Shown piece by piece: positions 44,769-59,546 of a stretch of 64,000 nucleotides of DNA. The position numbers were made by a program, and so were the translations under genes. Under the pieces are notes generated by a model. It saw only the letters and a program-made list of their open reading frames with translations. It had not been told where the DNA came from and did not search any database. The stretch is from Lepidodermella squamata (Eukaryota; Animalia; Gastrotricha). The first letter of the stretch is position 1, and each line of letters opens with the position of its first letter. The DNA is taken from assembly GCA_047495785.1 (NCBI GenBank), contig JBLDXI010000032.1, positions 3,534,001 through 3,598,000 on the forward strand, in the 5' to 3' direction.

Positions 44769-47014
44769 ATGGCTCCCGCCTCTAAAAATATAGTCATCCG
44801 CGTGCAATCCGGTGATTTTGGAACTAAACGAGTCGAAGTTACCCCGCTTGAATCGCTCGATGCTTTATATGAGAAAACGAAATCAGCGTTTTCACTGGAC
44901 ACTAATTCAGGCTGGGCGTTGTATACTGCGCGAGATCGATCGGGAGTGCTGACAAAAGGCGCCGCGAAGACAGTATCTGCGGCTCAGCTGAAACATGGAG
45001 ACATGATTTATATGATTTTTGACACGGGCGCGCTGACTAAGCTCAATAATGAGAGCAACGTGCAGGCTGATTATGCCATGGATATGTATGTGTCTCCTAT
45101 GACTGTTTCAGTTAAAACATTATATTGATTTTTCTGCAGAGCTTCTCCAGAAGATACGCCTGTAAAATCAACGCCGGCTGCTGTAAAACCAGTTTTCGTT
45201 CAGGAGGACGATGTCGATGTTCAGTTATGGCAACAAGACGGCAAAGTCGAGCGGGGAATTACGCCAAGCTGCAGTCACAATGCTAGGTCAAAATGCTTCA
45301 ACTGCGTTGCACTTGAGCCTTACGACGAGGAGTTGCTAAAAATGAAAGATATCAAGTTTCTTTCCTTCCATTCATACGTCCGCAAAATGCAATCTGGAGT
45401 GGATAAAGGGAAGTTTCTCTTCCTCGAGGACATCAACTGTCGCATCAAACCTGGCTGCCGTGATCATTTGCCATGGCCGAAAGGTATTTGTACAAAATGC
45501 CAACCGAGTGCCATAGTCTTGAATCGTCAGAAATATCGCCACGTCGACGGTATCGTCTTCGAGAATCATCATTTCGTTGATCGATTTCTCAATTACTGGC
45601 GTATGTCGGGCTGTCAGCGAATCGGTATTATGTTCGGAGTTTTCGAACCTCATCCCGATGTTCCTTTGGGCATTCGCGCTCGAGTATGTGCAATTTACGA
45701 GCCTCCTCAAAACTCATCTCCTCACAGCGTTGAGCTGCTTGAAGATCCTAATGAAGCTATTGTCATCTCAACCGCGAAAAAACTCGGTCTCCAACCTGTT
45801 GGATGGATATTCACTGATCTGCTTCCAAAAGATACTCGAAAAGGAACTGTTGAATGCCTGAGAGGCGCTGTACGTTTCTTATTAAACTGGATGAAAAGTC
45901 CTATATTGCTTTAAATTTTCAGGATACGTTTTTCCTCTCGGCAGAAGAATGCATATTAGCTGCTGAATTTCAAAATAAATTCCCCAATCCGTGCAAACTC
46001 TCGGCCTCCGGTTATTTCGGCTCGAAATTCGTTACAGTGGTAGCATCTGGTGCGTTGAATTCATGGATTTTGTTCGCAAATACAAAATGTTCATGCTTGA
46101 TAGGTGATCAAAGCAATCAAATCCATTTCGAGGCGTACCAAGTGTCTAACCAATGTATGGCCCTGGTTCGTGATAATTGCCTCGTGCCTACAGTCGACCG
46201 GCCCGAGCTGGGCTATGTGCGCGAATCCTCAAGCGAGCAGTACGTGCCAGACGTTTTCTATATGGTAAGTGAAACGTAGTAAATATCTTACACACATATC
46301 CAGATCATAAAGAGAATTATTACTGTTGCGTTCTGTTTACCTCGAGAAACAGCCGCCTTAATAATAATAATATGCTTTGTGGGCCCAGCTTGATGTGTGT
46401 ATTAACTATATGCGCTTTTGTTGTTTGTTTACACGCGAAAACGAAACCAGAAAGTCGATCAGTATGGTAATCAAGTGCGTGACTTGGCCCGACCGCTGCC
46501 CGTAGAATATCTCTTGCTCGATTTGTCAGCCACGTTTCCCATCGAAATGCGCTACACCTTCGCGGCGAATGACCAAATCTCGAATAAATTCCCGATCGAA
46601 AATCGTGAAATGATTGGCGAAGGCCAGTCGCTTTCACGTCTTCGCGCCTACTTCGACGAGTTTCCGAAAGATCAACTTAGTTTGGCTCTGAACGATTTCC
46701 ACGTTGTGATGAACCTTGCCCTATCTGAGGTTCTACCGATGAAGGCGGTTATCGACCAAATGTGCCAGGTTGTGAGGACAAACGATCCGTACGAATCGAG
46801 GCGATTCTTTCAAACCGACGAGTGGAATACTTTGATCGAAATTCTGAAAAGCGACCTCGACATTGGCTCACCTGCCGCTTCTATGGAGACTGGCGGCGCG
46901 TCAGGCAGCCGGGTCAGCTCTACCTGGACTTGCGGCGTTTGCACGTACGAAAACCGAGGCAGCAAAGGCGACTGCGAAATGTGTGGTCTGCCTCGCAATG
47001 CTGAGATGAACTGA
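44769..47014 (+). CDS. NPLOC4: Nuclear protein localization 4 (p97/Cdc48 cofactor), multi-exon
   Basis: IVIRVQS UBL start, HLPWPKGICTKCQPSAIVLNRQKYRHVD, AIYEPPQ, GWIFTDL, ARPLPVEYLL and C-terminal NZF finger WTCGVCTYEN..CEMCGLP. Confidence 0.95.
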
Positions 47015-47190: not shown

Positions 47191-50100
47191 ATGAATTCCC
47201 TTCACGAGTGTTGGGCGTCTTTTCACAAATTATGTGTAAGTACAAATTTATTACGATTGTCTCATAAGTAATTAATTTAATTTTTTAAAAGGAAAATTTT
47301 TACGAAGTGCACCCGATTGGAAGCGTAGTTGCAACCAGCATCGCGATAACAGTGCCTTTCCTGTATTACCTTTACAACAGAAATCTTCAGTTCTGGACTT
47401 TTAAGCTGGACGAATGGACATCGGTTGAAATAGCGAAAGGAGTACGTTGCAATAAGGCGGTGGCAAAAACCGGCTTGGTCGATTCTCTAGACCACAAGCT
47501 TAAAGGCAAAGGTCTCGTTAAGACTGTCTACGACTGCTTCCAACATGGTGTTGCCGTCTCCAGTAAATTTTTCAATGCGAAAATTGATTGCTTTTCAATA
47601 AATTATAATGTATTTTCAGACGACAGACCTTGCATGGGTCGATTGGTCGACAATGCCTCGAGATACGAATGGCTGACTTACGGCGAAGTCGCGAAGCAAT
47701 CTCGACTGGTTGCTCAGCTGCTTCGCGGGCGAGGCGCGAAACGCCAGGAATGCGTCGGAATTTACGCTGTTAATAGCCCCGAGTGGGTGATGGCTCAACT
47801 TGCCTGCGTTATGCAATCCCTTGTTACAGGTAACGCATTGCTCTTAAATTGAGGTGGTCAAAAAATATCCCATTTCGAATTTTAGTCCCCCTTTACGATA
47901 CTCTGGGCCCTGAAAGTATTCGCCATTCCATCAATGAAGTCGAGCTGGGTGTGTTGTTTTGTGATTCCGAGGACAAGTTGAAGAAAATTCTGGCGGAGCG
48001 GAAAAATTTCCCGACCTTGCGGCTCTTCATCTTACTCAACGATAACGTGAAAGACGCTAATTTCGCCAATGATTGCAAGACCAACGGAATCGAACTGCTG
48101 ACATGGTCTCAATGCAAAGCCGCTGGAGCGGAGTACTCGAATATTAAGGATGACGCGCCGAAACCGGACGATCTTTTCTTGATTCAATACACAAGTGGCA
48201 CGACAGGTTTGTCTATCCATCCCTTTAACCCAAGTAGTTTCACACAGTTAAGGTGGCTGTTCAGGCATCTCAAAGGGCGTAATGTTGACGCATCAGAACA
48301 TGGTTGCTGATATTGCTGGCGCCGAAGGCCTCGACTTCTTGCTGAAGGCCAAGGGCATGGATTTGATGTCAAACGAAGATAGAATGTTTTTCTACATGCC
48401 TCTGGCTCATGGCTATGGTCAAACTGCCATGGTTTGTTTAAGTGTTGTCGTTGTGATGTCTGAAAGATGCGGAATACCACCTTAATTGTAGTCTGAAAGT
48501 CTAAGCCATTTTAACACAGTCTTTCTAATGGTTGTTTTTCTCTTCTGTCTTTCGATGTTTTAAAGGTATCTGTAAAGGTGTTCAGCTTTGCCATTCGAAT
48601 TTACCCGCTCAAATGGCGGGTTTCGAATACCTGCCGTTCATTATTCACGGGAAGGATTTTATGCTCGGGCCTGAAGATCGGATTTATCTCTTCTTGCCAT
48701 TGGCTCACGCTTATGCGCAAGTGGCTACGGTATAATCTTAGACACAACTGTACCCGAGTGATTTAGTTCCGAAACTAACAGCTATAAGGGTGTAGACATT
48801 TTGCATGACACTACTAACGCTTTCCTTAATTATCAAGGTTGCATCAGGTTGAGCTTGGGTGCGTTTTAGTAGTTGCTCCTTTTTATTAGCGTGAAATTGT
48901 TGAATCTTCTTCGACTTGGTTTTTATCTATGCTTCATCCCGTAAGAATTCTGAGATGGTCTTAGATCATCCGATTATCTTTAGTTTCTCTTGTGGAATTC
49001 CGCATGTTTCTGCGTTGCATTTCTCGCGTTTATCACCAATACATCTTCTTCATTACCTTTGCAGGTCTGGTTTTTGTACGCGGGTGGTCAAATTGCGTTC
49101 TCTTCTGGCAACGTTACTCGAATCGTCAACGAAATGCAGCTGAGCCAACCGACGTATCTGCCTCTCGTGCCACGAATCATGAATCGTGTCTACACTAAAG
49201 TTGTGGAGGAGACTAAATCTGGTTTCAAGGGGTGGCTTTTCTGGAAATGTTACGAGGGCAAGCGGCGGTTGTTCAAACAAGGCTGTCTGACCCGAAACTC
49301 TGTTTACGACTGGCTAGTTTTCCGAAGGCTCCAAAAGATGATTGGTGGACGCGTTCGCTTCATGACCACTGGTTCTGCGCCAATCGGTGTTGAAGTGCTC
49401 GAATTTTGGCGGGTTGTGTTTGGTGCTTTTGTGAGTTTCACTATTACAAGCGTCACATTTCATATCGTAAATTTATCGCAAATCAGATTATGGAAGGTTA
49501 TGGTCAAACTGAGAACACATCGGCTGCAACTGGAGCTATTGACGTGACTGGTGGCAATGTTGGACATCCGATCTTGTGCAACTACATCCGTTTGCTGGAC
49601 CTGCCCGAGCTTGGCTATACCACAGACAACGACCCACCACAAGGCGAAATCTGCATCAAGGGAACGAATGTAATGAAGGGATACTACAAGCAACCACAGT
49701 TGACGAAAGAAGCGTTCACTGCTGATGGTTGGCTAATGACTGGCGATATTGGCGAGTTTTTGCCCGATGGATCGCTGCGAATGATCGATCGCAGGAAACA
49801 CATCTTCAAGCTGGCGCAAGGCGAGTACGTCGCCCCGGAGAAAATCGAAGCAATCTATGCCCAATGCCCCCTTGTCGCTCAATGTTTCATCGATGGAAAC
49901 AGTTTGCAACCCTACGTTATTGCTGTTGTTGTCCCTGAGGAAGGCGCAGCTAAATCTTGGGCGAAAGCTCAGGGCCTGACCAATGTTTCTCTCAGCGATC
50001 TGTGCTCGAATAAAGTAAGTCTCGTTCTCTCGACCATACCATTTTTTAATCGGGCTTTTTAACAGGATTTTAGACGTCACGTTTTGGACGCTATGTTGGC

Positions 50101-50296
50101 GCTTGGCAAGGAGAAGAAGCTGAATTCTCTTGAGCAAATCAAATCATTGTACCTTCACTCCGACCCATTTTCGGTCGTCAATGGCCTGTTGACACCGTCG
50201 CTTAAGAACAAGCGAAATGACCTGCGCCGTCGCTTTGAGGCTGAGATCGAACAGCTTTATAAGGCTGGACCCTTGATCGCTTCCAATAGAGATTGA
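47191..50296 (+). CDS. ACSL: Long-chain acyl-CoA synthetase (ACSL1/5/6-like) paralog a, with N-terminal membrane anchor and mutually exclusive exons 48265-48431 / 48566-48729
   Basis: [64 protein letters not shown]. First exon 47191-47235. Confidence 0.93.
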
Positions 50297-52239
50297 TCGA
50301 GTGATTATTTTCAACAGTGAACGAAAAACGCCCGATAAAGACTCAATTTATAACCTCGAAATAGTCAACTTCAGACATATCGCAGTCATCTATTAGAGGC
50401 AGACGTCCTTCCTATATTTTATATTAGTCGTTTTTAGACTAGTGTTATCTCCTGGTTAGACAGAGAGAGATCATGTAGTGCCTTATATTATTCAAGGCGA
50501 TACGCTAGTATAAAACCGACGTCTAATCCCTGAATTGAGCCGATGGCTACTTCTATGATAAACACAGACCTGTTACGCTTATGGTTTATGGACCACTGAC
50601 TTTTCTTTTCTGCGTCTCGAACATGTTTTCTGGCGCGAGCTCTTCAAGTCACGCTTTGCGCAAAAATGTGCCGGTTTGTCGTGGTGATTTTTCTCTACTA
50701 ATCTTGTTCTTTATATAAAGTTATTTACAAGGCCTTCAATTAAGTGTATGATATAGATGTTTTCTGCACGAATAAGCGCGCTTAGAGATTTTTCTACGAC
50801 TTTTTTTCGGAAAAAAAACTGCTTTTGTAAATAAGAAATAAGCGAAAATCGAACCTGTAATTTTGCTAATTTCTTTGCATTCCGGTCGCGGTAGTTCGAC
50901 TACCTGATCGTTTGTTTTTGAGGCTTGGAAATTCTAATTTTCTGCGGGAATTTAATAGCGCATTATTGTCGATTTGTTCCAGATTGATTTTATGATTATC
51001 CAGGTTAAATCAATAGGCTGTAATCTATGTTCTGCTCATGTTTTCGTCTGTTGTTCAATTGATTAGAGATCAAATTGTTTTATCGAACATGTATACCTTT
51101 ATGCCACTGTCTTTGCTCATGATTGTGCTATTTTTCCTACTCTTCACCTGGAAATTATTGTTCCCAAAACGCCTCTCTTGTGCAAAATGCCCTCGAAATT
51201 GTGCCCGATATTTCATTGACTGGCCTGCTTGTTTTATATTGATGTTTTTTCGCTCGTACTATATTATTGTTATTATCGTCCGTGTCGCGACAAGTTAATC
51301 AAACACATATATTCACACACCACAAAGTACATACATACACACATTGCAGCAGTCGAGTGAGGAGAAATGTTGAAACGAATTACGGTACCAATTGATAAAG
51401 ATAAAACAATAAACAATTACTTTTCCCGCTCGTAACATGTCTCACACATAGGGTTCTAGGTTACTCGAATGGCGTGCCGCGGTTTTGTTGTACCACGCCT
51501 ATTTCATGGCAGCTATCTACATCTTCCTTTTATAATACCTATACGTGTACTATGCGTCTTGAATCGGCGGCGATATGCTCGAGCGATAAAAACGAGTTGA
51601 AAGGAAAAAAACTAGACGCACCGCTGACGTAGGCGCTCAATTGAAAAACTATAATGGCTTCGCTGGTGTGAATGTCAACCGATGGCGACAACGGGCGACT
51701 AACGAGCATGTTAATGTGTAAAGTGGACGGCTCGTTAGAAAAACGAGGTCTAAATGGGGTTGATGGTGTGAGATTGCCGCACGTGTGTATCGGATTTGAT
51801 TCTCTTGTTGTAATAGCGTATTACACCTTGTTAAACAAGCGTGTTGATTAAAAAAGAGCGCCGCTCAATGTAAAATAGTGGTTGGTTGTATGGAAACCAA
51901 GCCGTTTTTTATTGGTGGTCATAATAAAGTATATATTCGCGGTAGCCATACGTACTTGGCTCGGAACAATTTACATCCACCCTATATGTCAGGGTTGTAT
52001 ATAATTATTTTTTCTACTTCTGTATACTTATTAGTGCGTGTTCAGGAGCGACGTGTTATATTAATATTATATAAGTATAATACACCTGATTTTTTGGCCG
52101 CCCGTTGAGTCTACGAAAGCCGACCCCCGAAAAAGAAAAATTACCTGCTGCTGCTGCCGCCGCTACTACTGCTGTTTCGTCGTCTTGTATTCATTGCGTA
52201 GTAATGAGAAAATCTCCGTCTATTGGCGCGAGTCCATCC

Positions 52240-55200
52240 ATGGTTAGTCTGGTTTTGTACTTTGTACCATAAATAGGGTGGCTTATCAAATGAAAATATG
52301 GTATTTACAAGGAGTTGTAATTTTACTTAAGGTGGACTTTTTTGTTCGATTTTTTGCGACCTTTGACTTTATTAAAATCGGATTTTAGAGTTGCTAGGCC
52401 CCCTTTTTCTTTTGATATTATGACTGGTGCGGTAATGAGGCCATACATACCCTATGCCTTCAATTGTATAGGACAGCAAATATTTGACTAATGGTACGAA
52501 TGGCAGTACGCCGAATGGCCGTGATTCACCCTCTACTCCGAACTCTGCTGCGTCAAAGAACGGCCACGCCGTCAATGGCCACAGCAATGGCAAGTATACT
52601 ACGCCGCTGAAGCCTGTTGTACAAATAGGTGGCATCGTGTCTGAGCCCGTTAATTTGAACACTACGCCAACGTCGAGCGGTAAGAACAGCGATTCACCCA
52701 AATCGAAAGGATCCGCTGAGAAAATGCCGAAAGGCGCGCCCACAGTTTACGACAAGTGGGGCTCGTACGAGGTTGAGCCGGGCATTCGATGCTCACGCAT
52801 GTGCTCGCACGCTGAGCCTCTCGTATCAACGCCGGCCAACGATCCGAACGTCAAGACGACCTGGGACGTTTTCCGTCACGGTTTGGCTATTTCGCCCCGG
52901 GGCAACTGCCTCGGCTGGCGAGAGGGTGACGCCTTTAAATGGTGGTCCTATGAAGACGTGGGTGAACAAGTGCGACAACTCTGCGGCGCTCTGAAGCTTA
53001 AAACTAAGCTGGCGCGCCAGAGTTTTGTCGGAATCTACGCCGCCTGTGTGCCGCGTTGGGTCGTTTGCTCACTTGCCATCAACGCTCGGTCGCACTGCAT
53101 CGTGCCCCTCTACGACACTCTTGGCCCTGAAAGCTGTACCTACATTATTAACCAGGTTTTTTTTAATCTCATTCCAAAATTAGGGTATAAATATGGCGTT
53201 ATTTTTTAGGTGGAGATGACCATCATGTTTGTCGACACCGCTGTTGCAGCCACTCGTGTTTTGGATTCGATTAATACGACCCCAACTCTGAAAACCATTG
53301 TTTGCTTCCAGAGTGTTCTGAGTCACGAATTGGTCGAAAAGGCCAAGGTGGCTAATGTCACCCTGATCAGCCTAACCGATTTCGTTGCCGGGGTCGACCC
53401 TGATAACAAAAATGTGTACGACGAGCCGAATGCTGAAGACATTGCCATGGTCCAGTACACATCGGGTACTACCGGGTTCCCTAAGGGTGTTGTTCAAAGT
53501 CATCGCGCTTACGTGGCGAATGTTGCCGGGGCTGACTACCCGTTCTCGAAGCAGATCGACCCGGCGTTCACGATGTCTAACCGCGACATCTGCCTTCAGT
53601 TCCTTCCTCTGGCCCACGCCTATGCTCAGATAGTTTGCACGTGGTTTTTGTTCCACGGCGCCTCTATCGGTTTCTTCGGCGGCAACGTTATGAAGTTGTT
53701 CGAAGATGCGGCGATTCTCAAGCCTACCTACATGCCAAGTAAAATTAGGAGAATTTTTTTTGGAAAATCGCTAAATTATTGAATTTTTCAGTGGTTCCTC
53801 GTATTATGAACCGTTTATACGGCAAGGTGAAAGGTGAAGTTGGAACTTCTGGCCTCAAGGCCAAAATGTTCTGGTTCTGCTACGAACGCAAACGCGATTT
53901 GGTGAACAAGGGCAAGGTTACTCGTGACTCAGTTTGGGACACCATTGCCTTCCGTCGCGTGCAGCGTCTTCTTGGCGGTAACGTTCGCATCATGACCGTC
54001 GGCTCTGCGCCCATTAGTGCCGAAGTCCTCGAGTTCTGGCGCGTCGTTTTCGGCGCCCTGGTAAGCAATAGCATAATATTTATTCATAAAATCAAATGAT
54101 TATTCAAGCATAATTAGATGGATAATATTAATAGGTCTAATAATAGTCCGTTGCTAGAATTAGGTCTGCTTAGAATCCAGCAAAATCCTCGGCGTGAATG
54201 CTAGCGGCAAAATTTCTTTCAAGGTGGCTGATTTGTAAACGCCATCCGTTGATCGTATCATATAGATTTTGATGTCCATATCGTGCGCAAATTCGGCGAT
54301 AAATTGCCTGCACCTACCGCAGGGTGATGTAAACTGACCGGGCGGGGCATCGGCTGCGACCGCTACAGCATGCAGCGTTTTCGCCCCTTCGGATATAGCT
54401 TTCGAAACAGCCGTAACTTCGGCGCAAACTCCAAGGCCGTAACAGGCGTTTTCAACATTGCAACCGAATACGATTTTTCTATGAAAGTTCAGGTAGATGA
54501 TTATTAAGGAAGATTTTTTGAAAAATTACCCTTCGTTAGTCAAAACAGCTGCGCCAACTAGAAAGTTGCTGTAAGGCGCGTAGGCTGGTTTGCGAGCTTC
54601 GAGGCTGGCTTTCATCAATGAAAGCAGTCCATCATCCTTGACACTGTCGATATTTCCGCAATTCCAAGAGTCTAATTCTTTGTCAGCCATAACTTTTTTG
54701 GCTTTGATGCGCTTTCTATAGCTTGTACGCAGCACTAAAATTGATAAAAATAAGCAAATGGAGTGAGATGACTTGTAGGCGAACAAAATGAGCAGATGAA
54801 AAGCTTACTTCCTTATATTTGCTCGCGCGTTAGCCAATCCTCCATGCAGCTTCCCGGTTAGATGCAATTATGCGGTAATATCGCTGTGAGCGTATTACGA
54901 GTCTATCGAATAATAGTTTTTATGCATGTCTGCCGTTTTTTTCCCCAGATCTTCGAGGGTTACGGGCAAACGGAGTGCACGGCTGTGGCAACTATTGCCG
55001 TCGGGCCTAGCGGCGGTGAGTTATTAATGGCGTGTTCATCTCTCATTTATTGCGGTATTTTTTTTGGTTTAATTAGGCAACGTCGGCCACCCATTGGCAT
55101 GTAATCTTGTTAAGCTGGCTGATGCGCCAGAATGTGGCTATTTCGTAAAAGATGGCCGCGGTGAGGTCTGCATCAAGGGCCCGAACGTCATGACCGGTTA

Positions 55201-55858
55201 CTACAAGCAGCCGGACAAGACGGCGGAGGCGATTGACGCCGACGGCTGGCTGCACACCGGTGATATTGGCGAGTTCTTGCCCGACGGCGCGCTGCGCATT
55301 TTCGACCGCAAAAAGCACATTTTCAAGCTGGCCCAGGGTGAATACATCGCCCCTGAAAAGATCGAAAACGTCTATGCTATGTGCTCTCTCGTCGCGCAAG
55401 TTTTCGTCGACGGCAGCAGCTTGGAGGTACACATTGAAAAATCTTGAACATATTTTAAGGAGGATTAGCGTTGTGAGCGGAATATTGAATTTTTGCGCTA
55501 TTTTTTCCAGTCATTCACCATTGCTGTGGTTGTACCGGATATGGCTGCTGCAAAGAATTGGGCCAAGGCGCATGGAATCGACGCGGAGACTGTCACGAAT
55601 AACCGTGAATTTTTGAAGTATATGTTGAGTGAAATGCACGCTGTTGGCAAGGCGAACAAGCTCAACTCGCTGGAGCAGGTTAAGAACATTTACTGCACGG
55701 CGGATGCTTTCTCGCCAGCGAACGGCCTTCTGACGCCGTCGTTGAAGAACAAGCGCCCGGAGCTGCGTCGTTATTTCGACGACCAAATCACGGCTATGTA
55801 CAAGGCTGGTCCCTTGGTCGAAGAAGCGAACGGCGGCAAGTCGCCGAACAAGAAATAA
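52240..55858 (+). CDS. ACSL: Long-chain acyl-CoA synthetase paralog b (F-gate); first coding exon ends ATG|gttag (alternative in-frame start at 52204)
   Basis: Same ACSL motifs; gate DICLQFLPLAH. An 888-nt intron at 54061-54948 hosts a nested gene. Confidence 0.93.
54160..54690 (-). CDS. CDA: Cytidine deaminase, nested antisense in an ACSL-b intron; intron 54479-54529
   Basis: AYAPYSNFLVGAAVLT..G|KIVFGCNVENACYGLGVCAE...SPCGRCRQFIAEF...LKEILPLAF (zinc motifs CAE and PCxxC). Exon 2 is absent from the ORF track. Confidence 0.92.
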
Positions 55859-56899
55859 AAGACTGCATATTTTGACCCGGAATAGCGTCGATGTAGATGT
55901 GAGTGCTGGTATAATTTGTTTTTCTTTTGTAAAAAATTCAAACTAGTGTCACATGTATTTGTTTTGCCTTTTCTCTTTCATGCCTCGCCCTTTAAAACAT
56001 GATGATATTATTCTCCAATTCTCAAGCTCATTTTGAGTCTAAAAGCACCGCTCCTGAATATTTTGCCCTCAGATCATTGAAATCTCTTTTGAGGCTTTAT
56101 CTAAAGTATTAACTAGTTTTCTGGCCTCATTACAATTTTTCATGGAAATCATCGATTTGTTTTTTTCATGCTGATCACCGGGACAGATTTACGCACGACA
56201 TTGACGTTCACTACCTCCAATTGAATCACTATAGCTAACTGCTGAATACTTCGTCTTCTATCACGCATTTGATCCTAATAATTTGGAATTAGTCAGTTGC
56301 TCTGAACCCTGTTGATGAATGTAAAGTTACGATATTATTTGGAGACATATTATTTGTCATTATTCACGTGAAACCTGTCGTGTTTGAGTGTGCAATGCTT
56401 CGTCAAACTTCCCGTGTAAATTTTAATCCGAAAATGATTATTTTGAGACGTGATACTGAGACTTTTTCTGCTGTCATCTTATCGTCTAGATAAAAATGTA
56501 TCTATTTATGGCTGAAAAATCAGGGGAAAAAATGTATCTATATTTACGTGAAATCAAAATTAAAGATGTTATAATTTTTTGCTGCTGACATTTCGAAGTA
56601 AAAAATAATCAGGGATCGATTTTTATCTTTTTTTTTTAGATTTTTTCTCAATTTTTTGCCTGTGATGGTTCGATCACGAGTTCCTTTGTTGTTCCAAGTC
56701 CGATTGTGGCGCGTCATGCGTCATGGAAGGCAATACAATGGAGCGCGTGCGCACTGAGACCACGTGCCGCCTTAATATTTTGCAAATCATCAGATGCGCT
56801 TTTGTTTTATATACGATCGATTTGATGTGATTTATAGGTCCGCAGATTTTTCATCACCTGGTTGTTTACATATTTATTATCGCTTGTAGCTGAGATTAC

Positions 56900-59190
56900 A
56901 TGGTTAGCCAGCGATTTTAAATTTTTTCAAATTTTTTCGAATTATTAATATGTTTATTACAGGCAACAACTCCAGTGAGAAACGGCTCGCCTGGGGGTGC
57001 GACTGCCGATGCTTATAGCCCGTCGAAATCGCCAAGCCCGAAAAAGGCTGCCCAGTCGACTATTTACGACATGTGGTCGTCGTACGAGGTGCAGCCGGGT
57101 GTTCGCGCGAGCGTGCTATGCAAACGCACAGACGGCGAGCTGATCGGCAAACCGGACGACCCCGCCGGCATCGACACCACTTGGCACTCTTTTCGCCACG
57201 GCCATCAGCTGAACCGCTACGGCAACTGCCTGGGCTGGCGCGAGGGTGACACGTTCCAGTGGCTGACCTATGAAGACGTGTATCGGCAGGTTCGTGGCCT
57301 GGCGGGAGCGCTGGCTTCGAAGACGCAGTTGAAGCGCCAAGATTGCGTTGGCATCTACTCGAGTTCCAAGCCGAACTGGATTATCGTGTCTCTCGCGCTT
57401 AATTCCCGGTCGCTCGTTATGGTCCCACTTTACGACACCCTAGGCGCTGAGTCGTGCAATTACATCATCAACCAGGTAAAAAATCTGCCTTAAAATTGCG
57501 ATTTACGGGTTTAATTTTTCATTTTTAAGGTTGAAATGCCGATTTTGTTCATCGATACACTGGTTGCTGCCAAGAAAATCATGGCTAATGCTGCTAAAAC
57601 GCCGTCGCTTCACTCGTTGGTACTTTTTGTTAAGCCGGACGCTGAGTTGGAACGGCAGGCGGCTGAGAGAAATATTACGTTGTACACGCTCGATGATTTT
57701 ATTGGCAAATATTACGACACCCCCGATGAGGTTGCTTTCGATTTGCCGACCGGTGATGACACGTGCGTTATCATGTACACATCGGGCACGACCGGCGAGC
57801 CGAAGGGTGTCATTCACACGCACAGCGCCCTTGTCGCCGATTTCATGGGCATCGATCACTTTTTCCTGAACGACTACGGACCAGGGTTGAATTTCTCGCA
57901 AAACGACGTTGGCCTGCACTATTTGCCACTCGCCCATTCCTACGGCCTGCTCGTCGCTAACTGGTTCATGTACCGCGGTGCTTCCCTCGGCTTTTTCAGC
58001 GGAAATATCCTGAAATTGACCGAAGATGCGGCCATTTTGAAGCCTACTTTCTTCCCGCTGTAAGTAGCGTATTTTTAAGCCGCCTTAAAATTTAGTTAAT
58101 TTTTTTATTTTTCCCAGTATTCCTCGTTTGATGAATCGCATCTATGGCAAAATTGTTGGAGAGCTGCAAAAGGGAGGTATCAAGTCGAGCTTGTTTTGGT
58201 TCGCCTACCGCCGTAAGCGTGACGCGATGATGCGAGGCGTAATTACCCGTGATTCGATTTGGGACAAACTGGTCTTCCGCAAAGTTCAGGCCATTCTCGG
58301 CGGTCGAGTTTGGTTCATGTCGGTCGGCTCTGCGCCGGTTTCTAGCGAGGTGCTTGAATTTTGGCGGGTCGTTTTCGGCTCGTTGATTCTCGAAGGTTAC
58401 GGCCAAACCGAATCGGCTGCCTGCGCCACCCTGGCTATGGGCCCGGTTGGCGGTAATGTGGGCCACCCTATTCAATGCAACTACGTTAAGCTGGAGGACG
58501 TGCCCGAATGCGGCTATTTCGTCAACGAGTCCGGCAAAGGCGAGATTTGCATTAAAGGCCTCAACGTGATGCGCGGCTATTACAAGCAGCCGGAGAAGAC
58601 CGCCGAGGCGCTGGATGCTGACGGTTGGCTGCACACGGGTGATATCGGCGAGTTTTTGCCCGACGGCTCGCTTCGCATTGTCGATCGTAAGAAGAATATC
58701 TTCAAGCTGGCCCAGGGCGAATATATCGCCCCTGAAAAGATCGAAAATGTCTACCTGTTGTGCCCTCAGGTACTTCAAGTTTTCGTCGATGGTAGCACGC
58801 TCGAGGTAAGATTAACCCACCTTAATTTAGCCATGATTTTCTAGATAATTTGATTTCCAGTCTTACACCGTTGCTGTTGTGGTGCCTGAGCCTTCATTGG
58901 CGGCTAATTACGCGACTGAGCATGGCTTGGATCCGAAAACGCTCCACCTTAACGTTGAATTCCGCGATCACATGCTCAAATTGCTGACGACAGTTGGCAA
59001 GGATAACAAGTTGAACGGCCTCGAGCAGGTCAAGGCTATTCATTTGGTTAGCGATGCGTTCTCCATCGAAAACGGCCTGTTGACGCCGACGATGAAAAAC
59101 AAACGTCCTGAACTTCGCAAGTATTTCAAGGAGCAAATTGAGGCTTTGTATAAAGCGGGCCCTCAGATTGGTGCCGAAAAGAAGGAATAA
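56900..59190 (+). CDS. ACSL: Long-chain acyl-CoA synthetase paralog c (Y-gate); first coding exon is ATG only (56900-56902)
   Basis: Same ACSL motifs; gate [14 protein letters not shown]|gttagc...tacag|GCAACA joins in frame with ORF 56975. Confidence 0.93.
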
Positions 59191-59546
59191 TGGCTGTGGC
59201 TGCAACATTTTTTGTGAAAGACTTTCAATCATTCAGTTTTCTCGGCAACCTTGTGCAACCTTGCTGAGATATTAATTAGTCTTCCCTGCACCTCTTTTTC
59301 TGCCCTAGTCTCATCAAGTCATTTGTGCTATATTTGTTTTGAACGATGGAAACCTCGAATATAACCGGTTGAACGAAACTGCTGATAAACAATGAAATCG
59401 ATCTGTTTAACCGAGAGTTTATTTTTGTTTGTTTTGGCTGAAGCATGCTCAGTTTTTGACGAAGCAGTCGACTTCAAAATTAAAATAAAATTTATTCAAT
59501 GCACCTCACTGTTCACCAAGGTTTATTGTATTATTTTACTTGTAAA

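Follow-up and report, generated by a model that had tools for sequence, protein, structure and literature searches.

Isoforms of long-chain acyl-CoA synthetases (ACSLs) determine which fatty acids go to which lipid pools. The switch between the gate exons of mammalian ACSL1 and ACSL6 is, to our knowledge, the only route by which a single ACSL gene arrives at differing catalytic cores. In these genes, two mutually exclusive exons of 26 residues encode the motif D-x4-(F/Y)-LPLAH-x2-E, with the Phe version located upstream of the Tyr version, and skipping of both gate exons yields an in-frame 'no-gate' form (PMC1543647). The gate-exon isoforms of human ACSL6 differ in activity (PMC2868784). As to how one of two such exons is selected, a general model of competing RNA pairings exists for mutually exclusive exons (PMC6071210), and for human ATE1 it was shown experimentally that R1 and R4 compete for R3 (PMC7797038). 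Here, we describe an ACSL-like gene, designated gene a, of the gastrotrich Lepidodermella squamata, which carries two tandem homologous exons, A and B, across the region extending from the P-loop to the gate. The gene resides in a stretch of 64,000 nt (assembly GCA_047495785.1, contig JBLDXI010000032.1, positions 3,534,001 to 3,598,000 of the forward strand), which is referred to as the window and within which positions are counted from the first nucleotide. Tandem-duplicated mutually exclusive exons, the ACSL gate switch and docking/selector control are known kinds of system, of which gene a is a further example. To judge from the sequences, its exon pair is real, conserved, frame-enforced and of independent origin; control by RNA stems is probable, and the Tyr/Phe contrast between the two exons is species-specific.

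The exon pair of gene a and its conservation

Gene a (47192..50296, + strand) encodes an AMP-binding enzyme and has a putative start codon at 47192. Its exons, delimited by GT..AG RNA joints of run X1 (see below), comprise an exon ending at 47562, 47620-47829, 47886-48206, 48265-48431 (exon A; the alternative, exon B, being 48566-48729), 49065-49430, 49487-50014 and 50066-50296, the last of which contains the stop codon. The constitutive exon preceding the pair (47886..48206, + strand) ends within the start of the P-loop, that is YTSGTT and the first base of the following Gly codon, with the phase-1 donor ACA G/gt (the slash marks the splice border). The constitutive exon following the pair (49065..49430, + strand) starts with VWFLYAGGQIAF, and its acceptor belongs to a phase-0 intron located seven residues past the His of PLAH.

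Exon A (48265..48431, + strand, 167 nt) is entered in phase 1 and left in phase 0, starting with ag/GC ATC TCA and ending with GCC ATG/gt. It reads ISKGVMLTH...FFYMPLAHGYGQTAM and spans from the end of the P-loop (SKG) to the Tyr gate, D-x4-Y-MPLAH, plus seven residues. Exon B (48566..48729, + strand, 164 nt) has the same phases, starts with ag/GT ATC TGT and ends with GCT ACG/gt; it reads ICKGVQLCH...YLFLPLAHAYAQVAT and extends from CKG to the Phe gate, D-x4-F-LPLAH, again plus seven residues. Both exons align to positions 178-222 of the Pfam AMP-binding profile and are 44% identical at the protein level (tblastn E 5e-13), which confirms the two homologous exons of 167 and 164 nt that the initial annotation had placed here. 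The 54-codon frame of exon B is intact, the exon has AG/GT borders and a strong pyrimidine tract, and the key residues KGV, H, D-R, PLAH, Y and Q are retained. Thus, the two exons are adjacent and homologous, of like length, in the same phases and furnished with usable splice sites, as is characteristic of tandem duplicates. The introns around the pair measure only 58, 134 and 335 nt.

Since the length of each exon is 3n+2 nt, inclusion of both or of neither shifts the reading frame and leads to a stop in the next exon (49065-49430), so that exactly one copy has to be chosen. When A and B are both skipped, the stop is encountered 43 codons into this exon; when both are included, it follows after 25 codons and lies upstream of two further junctions. 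The mutual exclusion proposed earlier is hence indeed enforced by the frames.

Evidence from RNA and DNA was drawn from Logan contigs of the only two public runs with matching DNA, one transcriptome-like (X1) and one genomic (X2). The X1 contigs splice out six GT..AG introns of gene a, that is, X1 behaves as a transcriptome. One X1 contig of 1193 nt, with a depth of 205, joins 47829 to 47886, 48206 to 48265, 48431 to 49065 and 49430 to 49487. The second and third of these joints show that exon A was spliced in and exon B was skipped. A is the main form in the X1 sample, from which we do not conclude that B is never used. Comparison of X2 with the window revealed six substitutions and one indel in the 469 nt of the two introns flanking exon B, and no difference in exons A and B.

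Both exons recur in a relative represented by a metagenome scaffold (L001); the closest database proteins of the family also come from metagenome assemblies. The constitutive exons of its gene a' are 60-80% identical to those of gene a, and synonymous sites are saturated (proportion of synonymous differences, pS, 0.73-0.93). Between the window and L001, the similarity of the three introns around the pair does not exceed that of shuffled sequences. Exon A' (L001:1539-1705) measures exactly 167 nt and is 71% identical to A in protein sequence, and exon B' (L001:1893-2056) measures exactly 164 nt and is 50% identical to B, both with AG/GT borders and the same phases. Identity between B and B' amounts to 0.61, 0.69 and 0.46 at codon positions 1, 2 and 3, and the proportion of nonsynonymous differences (pN 0.36) is lower than pS (0.59; Fisher p 0.0096). 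Moreover, several residues are common to B and B' but absent from A and A', namely C2, Q15, F19, I25-I26 and T54 (the P-loop Cys, AQ-x-AGF, II and the final AT), and A and A' likewise have exon-specific residues in common. Frame, length, splice sites and motifs of exon B would not have survived over this distance in a neutral relic; the exon has thus been under coding selection, albeit weaker than that acting on A. The sequences thus indicate that both copies are kept by selection in another species, this being one further species only.

Homology searches were carried out with single exons as queries. A metagenome scan for further relatives with the next exon (49065-49430) found nothing, a scan with exon A returned only bacterial AMP-binding genes with at most 46% identity, and a protein search with exon A provided no candidate relative. 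Among the additional scaffolds, L003 and L004 derive from the same species as L001 (L004 with 96.5% DNA identity), and L002, L005, L006 and L007 represent other paralogues with a single gate.

Origin of the pair and relation to the vertebrate gate exons

In fish ACSL1a (L088), the upstream exon ends with ACA G/gt, at the same phase-1 TSGTTG position that gene a has. Next come a 74-nt exon (NPKG...KITE), a phase-0 intron and two exons of 78 nt each, F and then Y; a further phase-0 intron is located seven residues past the His, matching the window in position and phase. The vertebrate isoform pairs compared differ over exactly residues 306-331. According to intron positions read from tblastn matches, the ACSL gene of the annelid Paralvinella is interrupted at the P-loop, at the internal site and after the gate, like fish ACSL1a, but contains a single gate exon; that of the mollusc Haliotis has the first two introns and a single gate. 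No second gate copy was found in the flanking introns of the sampled annelid and mollusc orthologues, and the annotated isoforms of Biomphalaria, Owenia and nematodes show no difference at the gate.

These comparisons bear on the convergent origin that the initial annotation had postulated, pointing out that the exons are longer than their vertebrate counterparts and naming identical exon borders as the observation that would speak for common ancestry. The exons are indeed longer, but only because the internal phase-0 intron is missing, and their outer borders are identical to introns of fish ACSL1a. The duplicated unit, however, is not the same, comprising 167 nt here and 78 nt in fish. Coincidence of the outer borders with fish and annelid introns thus reflects old intron positions rather than a shared duplication. 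Judged by its sequence, the exon A/B unit is the ancient 74-nt exon fused to the 78-nt gate exon, with the internal intron missing, which was subsequently duplicated.

Phylogenetic analysis agrees with a separate duplication. A tree of the cassette (54 columns) unites A, A', B and B' in a single clade (93/97) and, within it, B with B' (82/85). The clade is nested in a lineage-specific family (97/98) and is separate from the vertebrate exons; the remaining members of the family, namely b, c, L002 and L007, each have a single gate. Two derived states, loss of the P-loop Pro and presence of D-R before the gate, are moreover common to A and B and absent from the paralogues. Together with the single gate in annelid and mollusc and the differing unit length, the common clade of A, B and their orthologues makes an origin independent of the vertebrate pair well supported at the sequence level, with the tree of only 54 columns contributing moderate evidence. 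We also considered that paralogues b (Phe, AHAYAQ) and c (Tyr, AHSYG) could be frozen isoforms of an older A/B pair. This idea was rejected, because A and B are sisters with derived residues that b and c lack; the Phe in B and the Phe in b are thus independent.

Gene a shares with vertebrate ACSL1/6 the enzyme family, the D-x4-(F/Y)-LPLAH region next to the P-loop, a 3' border in phase 0 seven residues after the His and the location of the alternative region downstream of an ancient phase-1 P-loop intron (PMC1543647, PMC2868784). The two systems differ in the unit, which comprises 78 nt (26 aa) in vertebrates, where skipping of both copies stays in frame, and 167/164 nt in gene a, where exactly one copy is required. 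In gene a, unlike in vertebrates, the swapped segment also takes in the end of the P-loop together with the following 24 residues, and the order of the exons is Y then F instead of F then Y. Further differences are that the Tyr/Phe contrast of gene a is not conserved in the relative, that the family is devoid of the Glu of x2-E, and that the origin is separate.

A more general parallel is provided by a model in which the same functional region is duplicated independently in distant lineages, giving rise to analogous isoform switches. Such convergent tandem exon duplication is said to be a source of alternative splicing, reportedly recognized by Kondrashov and Koonin in 2001, by Letunic, Copley and Bork in 2002 and by Copley in 2004. 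The ACSL gate was not found as a case of convergent duplication outside vertebrates in the literature searched, and we know of no report that treats it as such.

The initial annotation had further interpreted the pair as a switch of the gate residue. In this genome, A has Tyr and B has Phe just before (L/M)PLAH, as proposed, but the contrast is not conserved, for exon B' of L001 (FSYLPLAH) shares the Tyr gate of A, A' and most paralogues. The Phe codon in exon B of the window is one base off Tyr (TAC vs TTC) and is most simply explained by a recent change. Among vertebrates, a frog ACSL isoform pair consists of Tyr and Phe, and ACSL1 of several rodents (gopher, pocket mouse and kangaroo rats) has Phe in both alternative 26-residue gate exons (ISFLPLAHMFE; pairs P0180/P0181, P0185/P0186, P0197/P0211, P0199/P0205 and P0223/P0240). 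Thus, the rule of an F gate and a Y gate is not universal even among mammals. What the gene a pair retains is the cassette as a whole rather than the gate residue.

Within this cassette, the P-loop consensus T-S-G-T-T-G-x-P-K-G is represented by TSGTTG and KG, but the Pro is absent. It is replaced by Ser in A and A' and by Cys in B and B' (48267-48275 and 48568-48576 in the window; 1541-1549 and 1895-1903 in L001). All paralogues including b and c, and nearly all of the ~90 homologues for which the P-loop was read, have kept the Pro. The exon-specific Ser/Cys difference is conserved between the two species, unlike Tyr/Phe. The complete gate motif D-x4-(F/Y)-LPLAH-x2-E is found in neither exon: A has D-x4-Y-MPLAH-GY-G and B has D-x4-F-LPLAH-AY-A, and throughout the lineage-specific family the Glu of LPLAH-x2-E is changed to Gly or Ala.

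Regarding the identity of the enzyme, the AMP-binding (ANL) domain covers the protein, with segments 75-174, 178-222, 226-311 and 315-384 of the PF00501 profile matching consecutively along the exons, followed by AMP-binding_C. The exon translations contain the downstream motifs GYGQTE, TGD, the DR-x-K linker and GEY-x-APE. A family member (P0005) and the exons of gene a match nematode, mollusc and vertebrate proteins annotated as 'long-chain-fatty-acid--CoA ligase 1/5/6' with 41-46% identity, and the family is placed among invertebrate ACSLs in the gate tree. A sequence search of PDB returned no eukaryotic ACSL structure; the nearest entries were adenylation domains of carboxylic acid reductases. 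We infer that gene a encodes a divergent ACSL1/5/6-type long-chain acyl-CoA synthetase, its long-chain specificity being putative.

Predicted competing RNA stems and the probable use of the two exons

The short introns around the pair contain three predicted pairing elements on the + strand. A docking site (48455..48499) is located in the A-B intron and can pair with either of two selectors. The upstream selector (48237..48280; inverted repeat I2) comprises 26 nt at the end of the upstream intron, the AG of exon A and 16 nt at the start of this exon. The downstream selector (48966..49017, core 48991-49017; inverted repeat I1) lies in the intron that follows exon B. The duplex formed by the docking site and the downstream selector has a core of 19 nt (48462-48480 with 48992-49010), is 89% complementary and has a predicted energy of -29.3 kcal/mol. 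The duplex of the upstream selector with the docking site involves 48237-48262, thus abutting the AG of exon A, and is predicted at -24.1 kcal/mol. In L001, the layout recurs although the sequences differ: the docking site (1769-1794) can pair with 2180-2204 downstream or with 1513-1536, which abuts the AG of A', at -24.8 kcal/mol each. The stem sequence common to both species is limited to the short core TGCGGAA / TTCCGCA.

Significance of the stems was assessed by 100 dinucleotide-preserving shuffles per intron pair. For the upstream and middle introns, z was -2.3 in the window (3/100) and -3.0 in L001 (0/100); for the middle and downstream introns it was -3.3 (0/100) and -2.6 (2/100), respectively. 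The upstream and downstream introns, serving as control, gave -0.2 and -0.6. When the entire region 48207-49064 was folded, the docking site paired with 48966-49016 in the minimum free energy (MFE) structure and with 48243-48280, i.e. across the 3' splice site of exon A, in the centroid. Forcing the two core stems in the window resulted in -228.9 vs -227.6 kcal/mol, that is, in a bistable fold. In L001, the docking site paired with the downstream element in both MFE and centroid structures, and the alternative lay ~6 kcal/mol above the MFE. According to these predictions, both species have one intronic element that is complementary to two others in mutually exclusive pairings, and the choice between the exons is probably made by competing RNA stems.

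This layout resembles that of ATE1 exon 7a/7b, Dscam1, srp and 14-3-3zeta, which likewise have two tandem homologous exons and a central intronic element (PMC7797038, PMC6071210, PMC4691838). As in systems of the ATE1/Dscam1 type, the central element would pair upstream of the first or downstream of the second exon, so that one exon is looped out. Unlike those systems, the layout of gene a is a prediction made in silico for two species, the introns are tiny (see above), and the 3' splice site of exon A itself lies within the upstream duplex.

Separately, low-depth X1 contigs (~4-14 compared with 205 for the exons) were observed at 48750-49060, covering the 3' two thirds of the intron downstream of exon B. 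They contain three 'opposite strands' joints (48787/48884, 48804/48907 and 48879/48996). No such contigs were found for the A-B intron and most of exon B. They could represent a stable intron fragment, a hairpin-driven complementary DNA artefact or a separate small transcript. A search of Rfam with 48150-49120 produced no match.

In light of these data, we consider it likely, with a probability of roughly 65%, that the pair works as a two-isoform, mutually exclusive switch in gene a. In this scenario, the exon that covers the second half of the P-loop and continues to seven residues beyond the (Y/F)-(L/M)PLAH gate would have been duplicated in tandem in this lineage, at a time when gene a had already separated from its neighbours b and c but the L001 species had not yet branched off. 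Two duplexes of nearly equal energy would be open to the docking site in the middle intron, one at a time. If it pairs with the downstream intron, exon B would be looped out and A chosen, which is the form observed in RNA. If it pairs with the final part of the upstream intron instead, the 3' splice site of exon A would be masked and this exon looped out, leading to the choice of B. At the protein level, the swap would affect a cassette of 55 residues linking the ATP-binding P-loop with the fatty-acid gate, ~55% of which would be replaced, and may thereby generate two enzymes with different activity or substrate preference. The change from Tyr to Phe at the gate would be incidental to the swap in this species, a recent event rather than the conserved point of the switch.

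Several observations weigh against such a switch. Among the four junctions that had been suggested for inspection, only the two of exon A were found; the joints 48206 to 48566 and 48729 to 49065 were not seen in the X1 contigs, which stem from a single run and can drop rare variants. The depth in X1 is 0 over most of exon B. Exon B evolves ~2-3 times faster than A (nonsynonymous divergence, dN, 0.49 vs 0.19), and its conservation is lower than that of any other exon of gene a. The stems are predictions for two species, and the arms in L001 are partly low-complexity sequence rich in GT/CA. Finally, enzyme activity is a prediction as well, made for a family that has no gate Glu and whose exons A and B have no P-loop Pro.

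The lack of RNA coverage over exon B and its dN, the highest of all exons, would both be accounted for if exon B were a silent relic in this species, once functional or functional only in the relative, with the gene making the A form only. The change of the gate Tyr to Phe and the other B changes specific to the window (end branch 1.21 in the tree) could likewise reflect relaxed constraint. However, a relic would hardly be expected to retain an intact 54-codon frame, AG/GT borders, a pyrimidine tract and the key residues, nor to keep its 164 nt exactly across a divergence that randomised the introns. The excess of pS over pN in exon B argues in the same direction, as does, weakly (p ~0.1), the absence of allelic differences from exon B between X2 and the window, compared to those counted in the flanking introns. 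In addition, competing stems would be of no use unless both exons were chosen. We thus regard a silent exon B as unlikely. Dosage control offers another way to explain exon B, which would then be a 'poison' exon: inclusion of A and B together would introduce a premature stop and lower expression, and no second enzyme would be made. The position of this stop, 25 codons into the next exon and upstream of two junctions, would suit such a role, and rare, degraded A+B transcripts are compatible with the RNA data. Yet a poison exon needs neither an open frame nor catalytic motifs, whereas exon B keeps a coding substitution pattern and enzyme motifs in both species, which renders this explanation highly improbable.

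We attach an equally small probability to the pair being ancestral, that is, to its descent from the same duplication as the F/Y pair of vertebrate ACSL1/ACSL6 in a bilaterian ancestor. This would be in line with the outer borders, which match fish ACSL1a introns in position and phase and bracket the region of mini-exon and gate exon, and with the presence of the same gate motif in the alternative region. But the duplication comprises a whole 167-nt exon including half of the P-loop here, and in fish it is confined to the 78-nt 3' part, which is preceded by a 74-nt exon present once and by an extra phase-0 intron. The order is also reversed, F preceding Y in mammals and fish (PMC1543647) and Y preceding F here. 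Moreover, the gate exon is present once in the sampled annelid and mollusc orthologues, whose flanking introns contain no further copy, and the annotated isoforms of Biomphalaria, Owenia and nematodes are the same at the gate. A and B are instead sisters within a lineage-specific family of single-gate members and share the non-Pro P-loop and D-R.

The ACSL locus and what a second switch would mean

Gene a (~47.2-50.3 kb) is the first of three ACSL-like genes arranged in tandem on the + strand of the window, followed by b (52.75-55.8 kb) and c (57.07-59.2 kb). Paralogue b contains one copy of the gate region (53483..53632, + strand; QFLPLAHAYAQ, Phe gate), without an intron at the P-loop or after the gate, and paralogue c also has one copy (57803..57946, + strand; Tyr gate, AHSYG) and is devoid of the flanking introns. 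Introns at the P-loop and after the gate are thus found in gene a and in fish and annelid ACSLs but are absent from b and c. An NPL4 gene is located directly upstream of the three paralogues, and the order NPL4, a', b', c' is also kept in L001 (window 47192-59200; L001 1-11900). At least three further single-gate ACSL paralogues reside elsewhere in the relative (L002, L005/L006 and L007), indicating a lineage-specific ACSL expansion.

Two additional observations were made at this locus. The last exon of the NPL4-like gene (46480-47014) encodes a terminal zinc finger of the RanBP2 type (W-x-C-x2-C...C-x2-C), and the syntenic place in L001 has zf-NPL4/NPL4 Pfam matches. Within gene a, the exon segment 49543-49805 occurs as a second haplotype in both runs, with 12 differences in 263 nt, ten of which are at third and two at first codon positions. 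This pattern points to high heterozygosity with purifying selection.

Taken together, we see about even odds for the complete scenario, namely that an invertebrate lineage re-invented the vertebrate ACSL1/6 switch at the same ancient introns, swapping the whole cassette from P-loop to gate and selecting it by a conserved bistable RNA switch. If this is true, two independent inventions would mark the cassette as an evolvable determinant of ACSL activity or specificity, and the Tyr/Phe residue itself would be incidental. The lack of conservation of the latter, with Tyr/Tyr in the relative and Phe/Phe in ACSL1 of some rodents, speaks for the remainder of the cassette being as important as the 'gating' residue. 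With its tiny introns and predicted bistable docking site, gene a would make a compact model for the control of exon choice by RNA structure. Moreover, a second independent switch over the same region would constitute natural evidence that the segment from P-loop to gate tunes the activity of ACSL enzymes.

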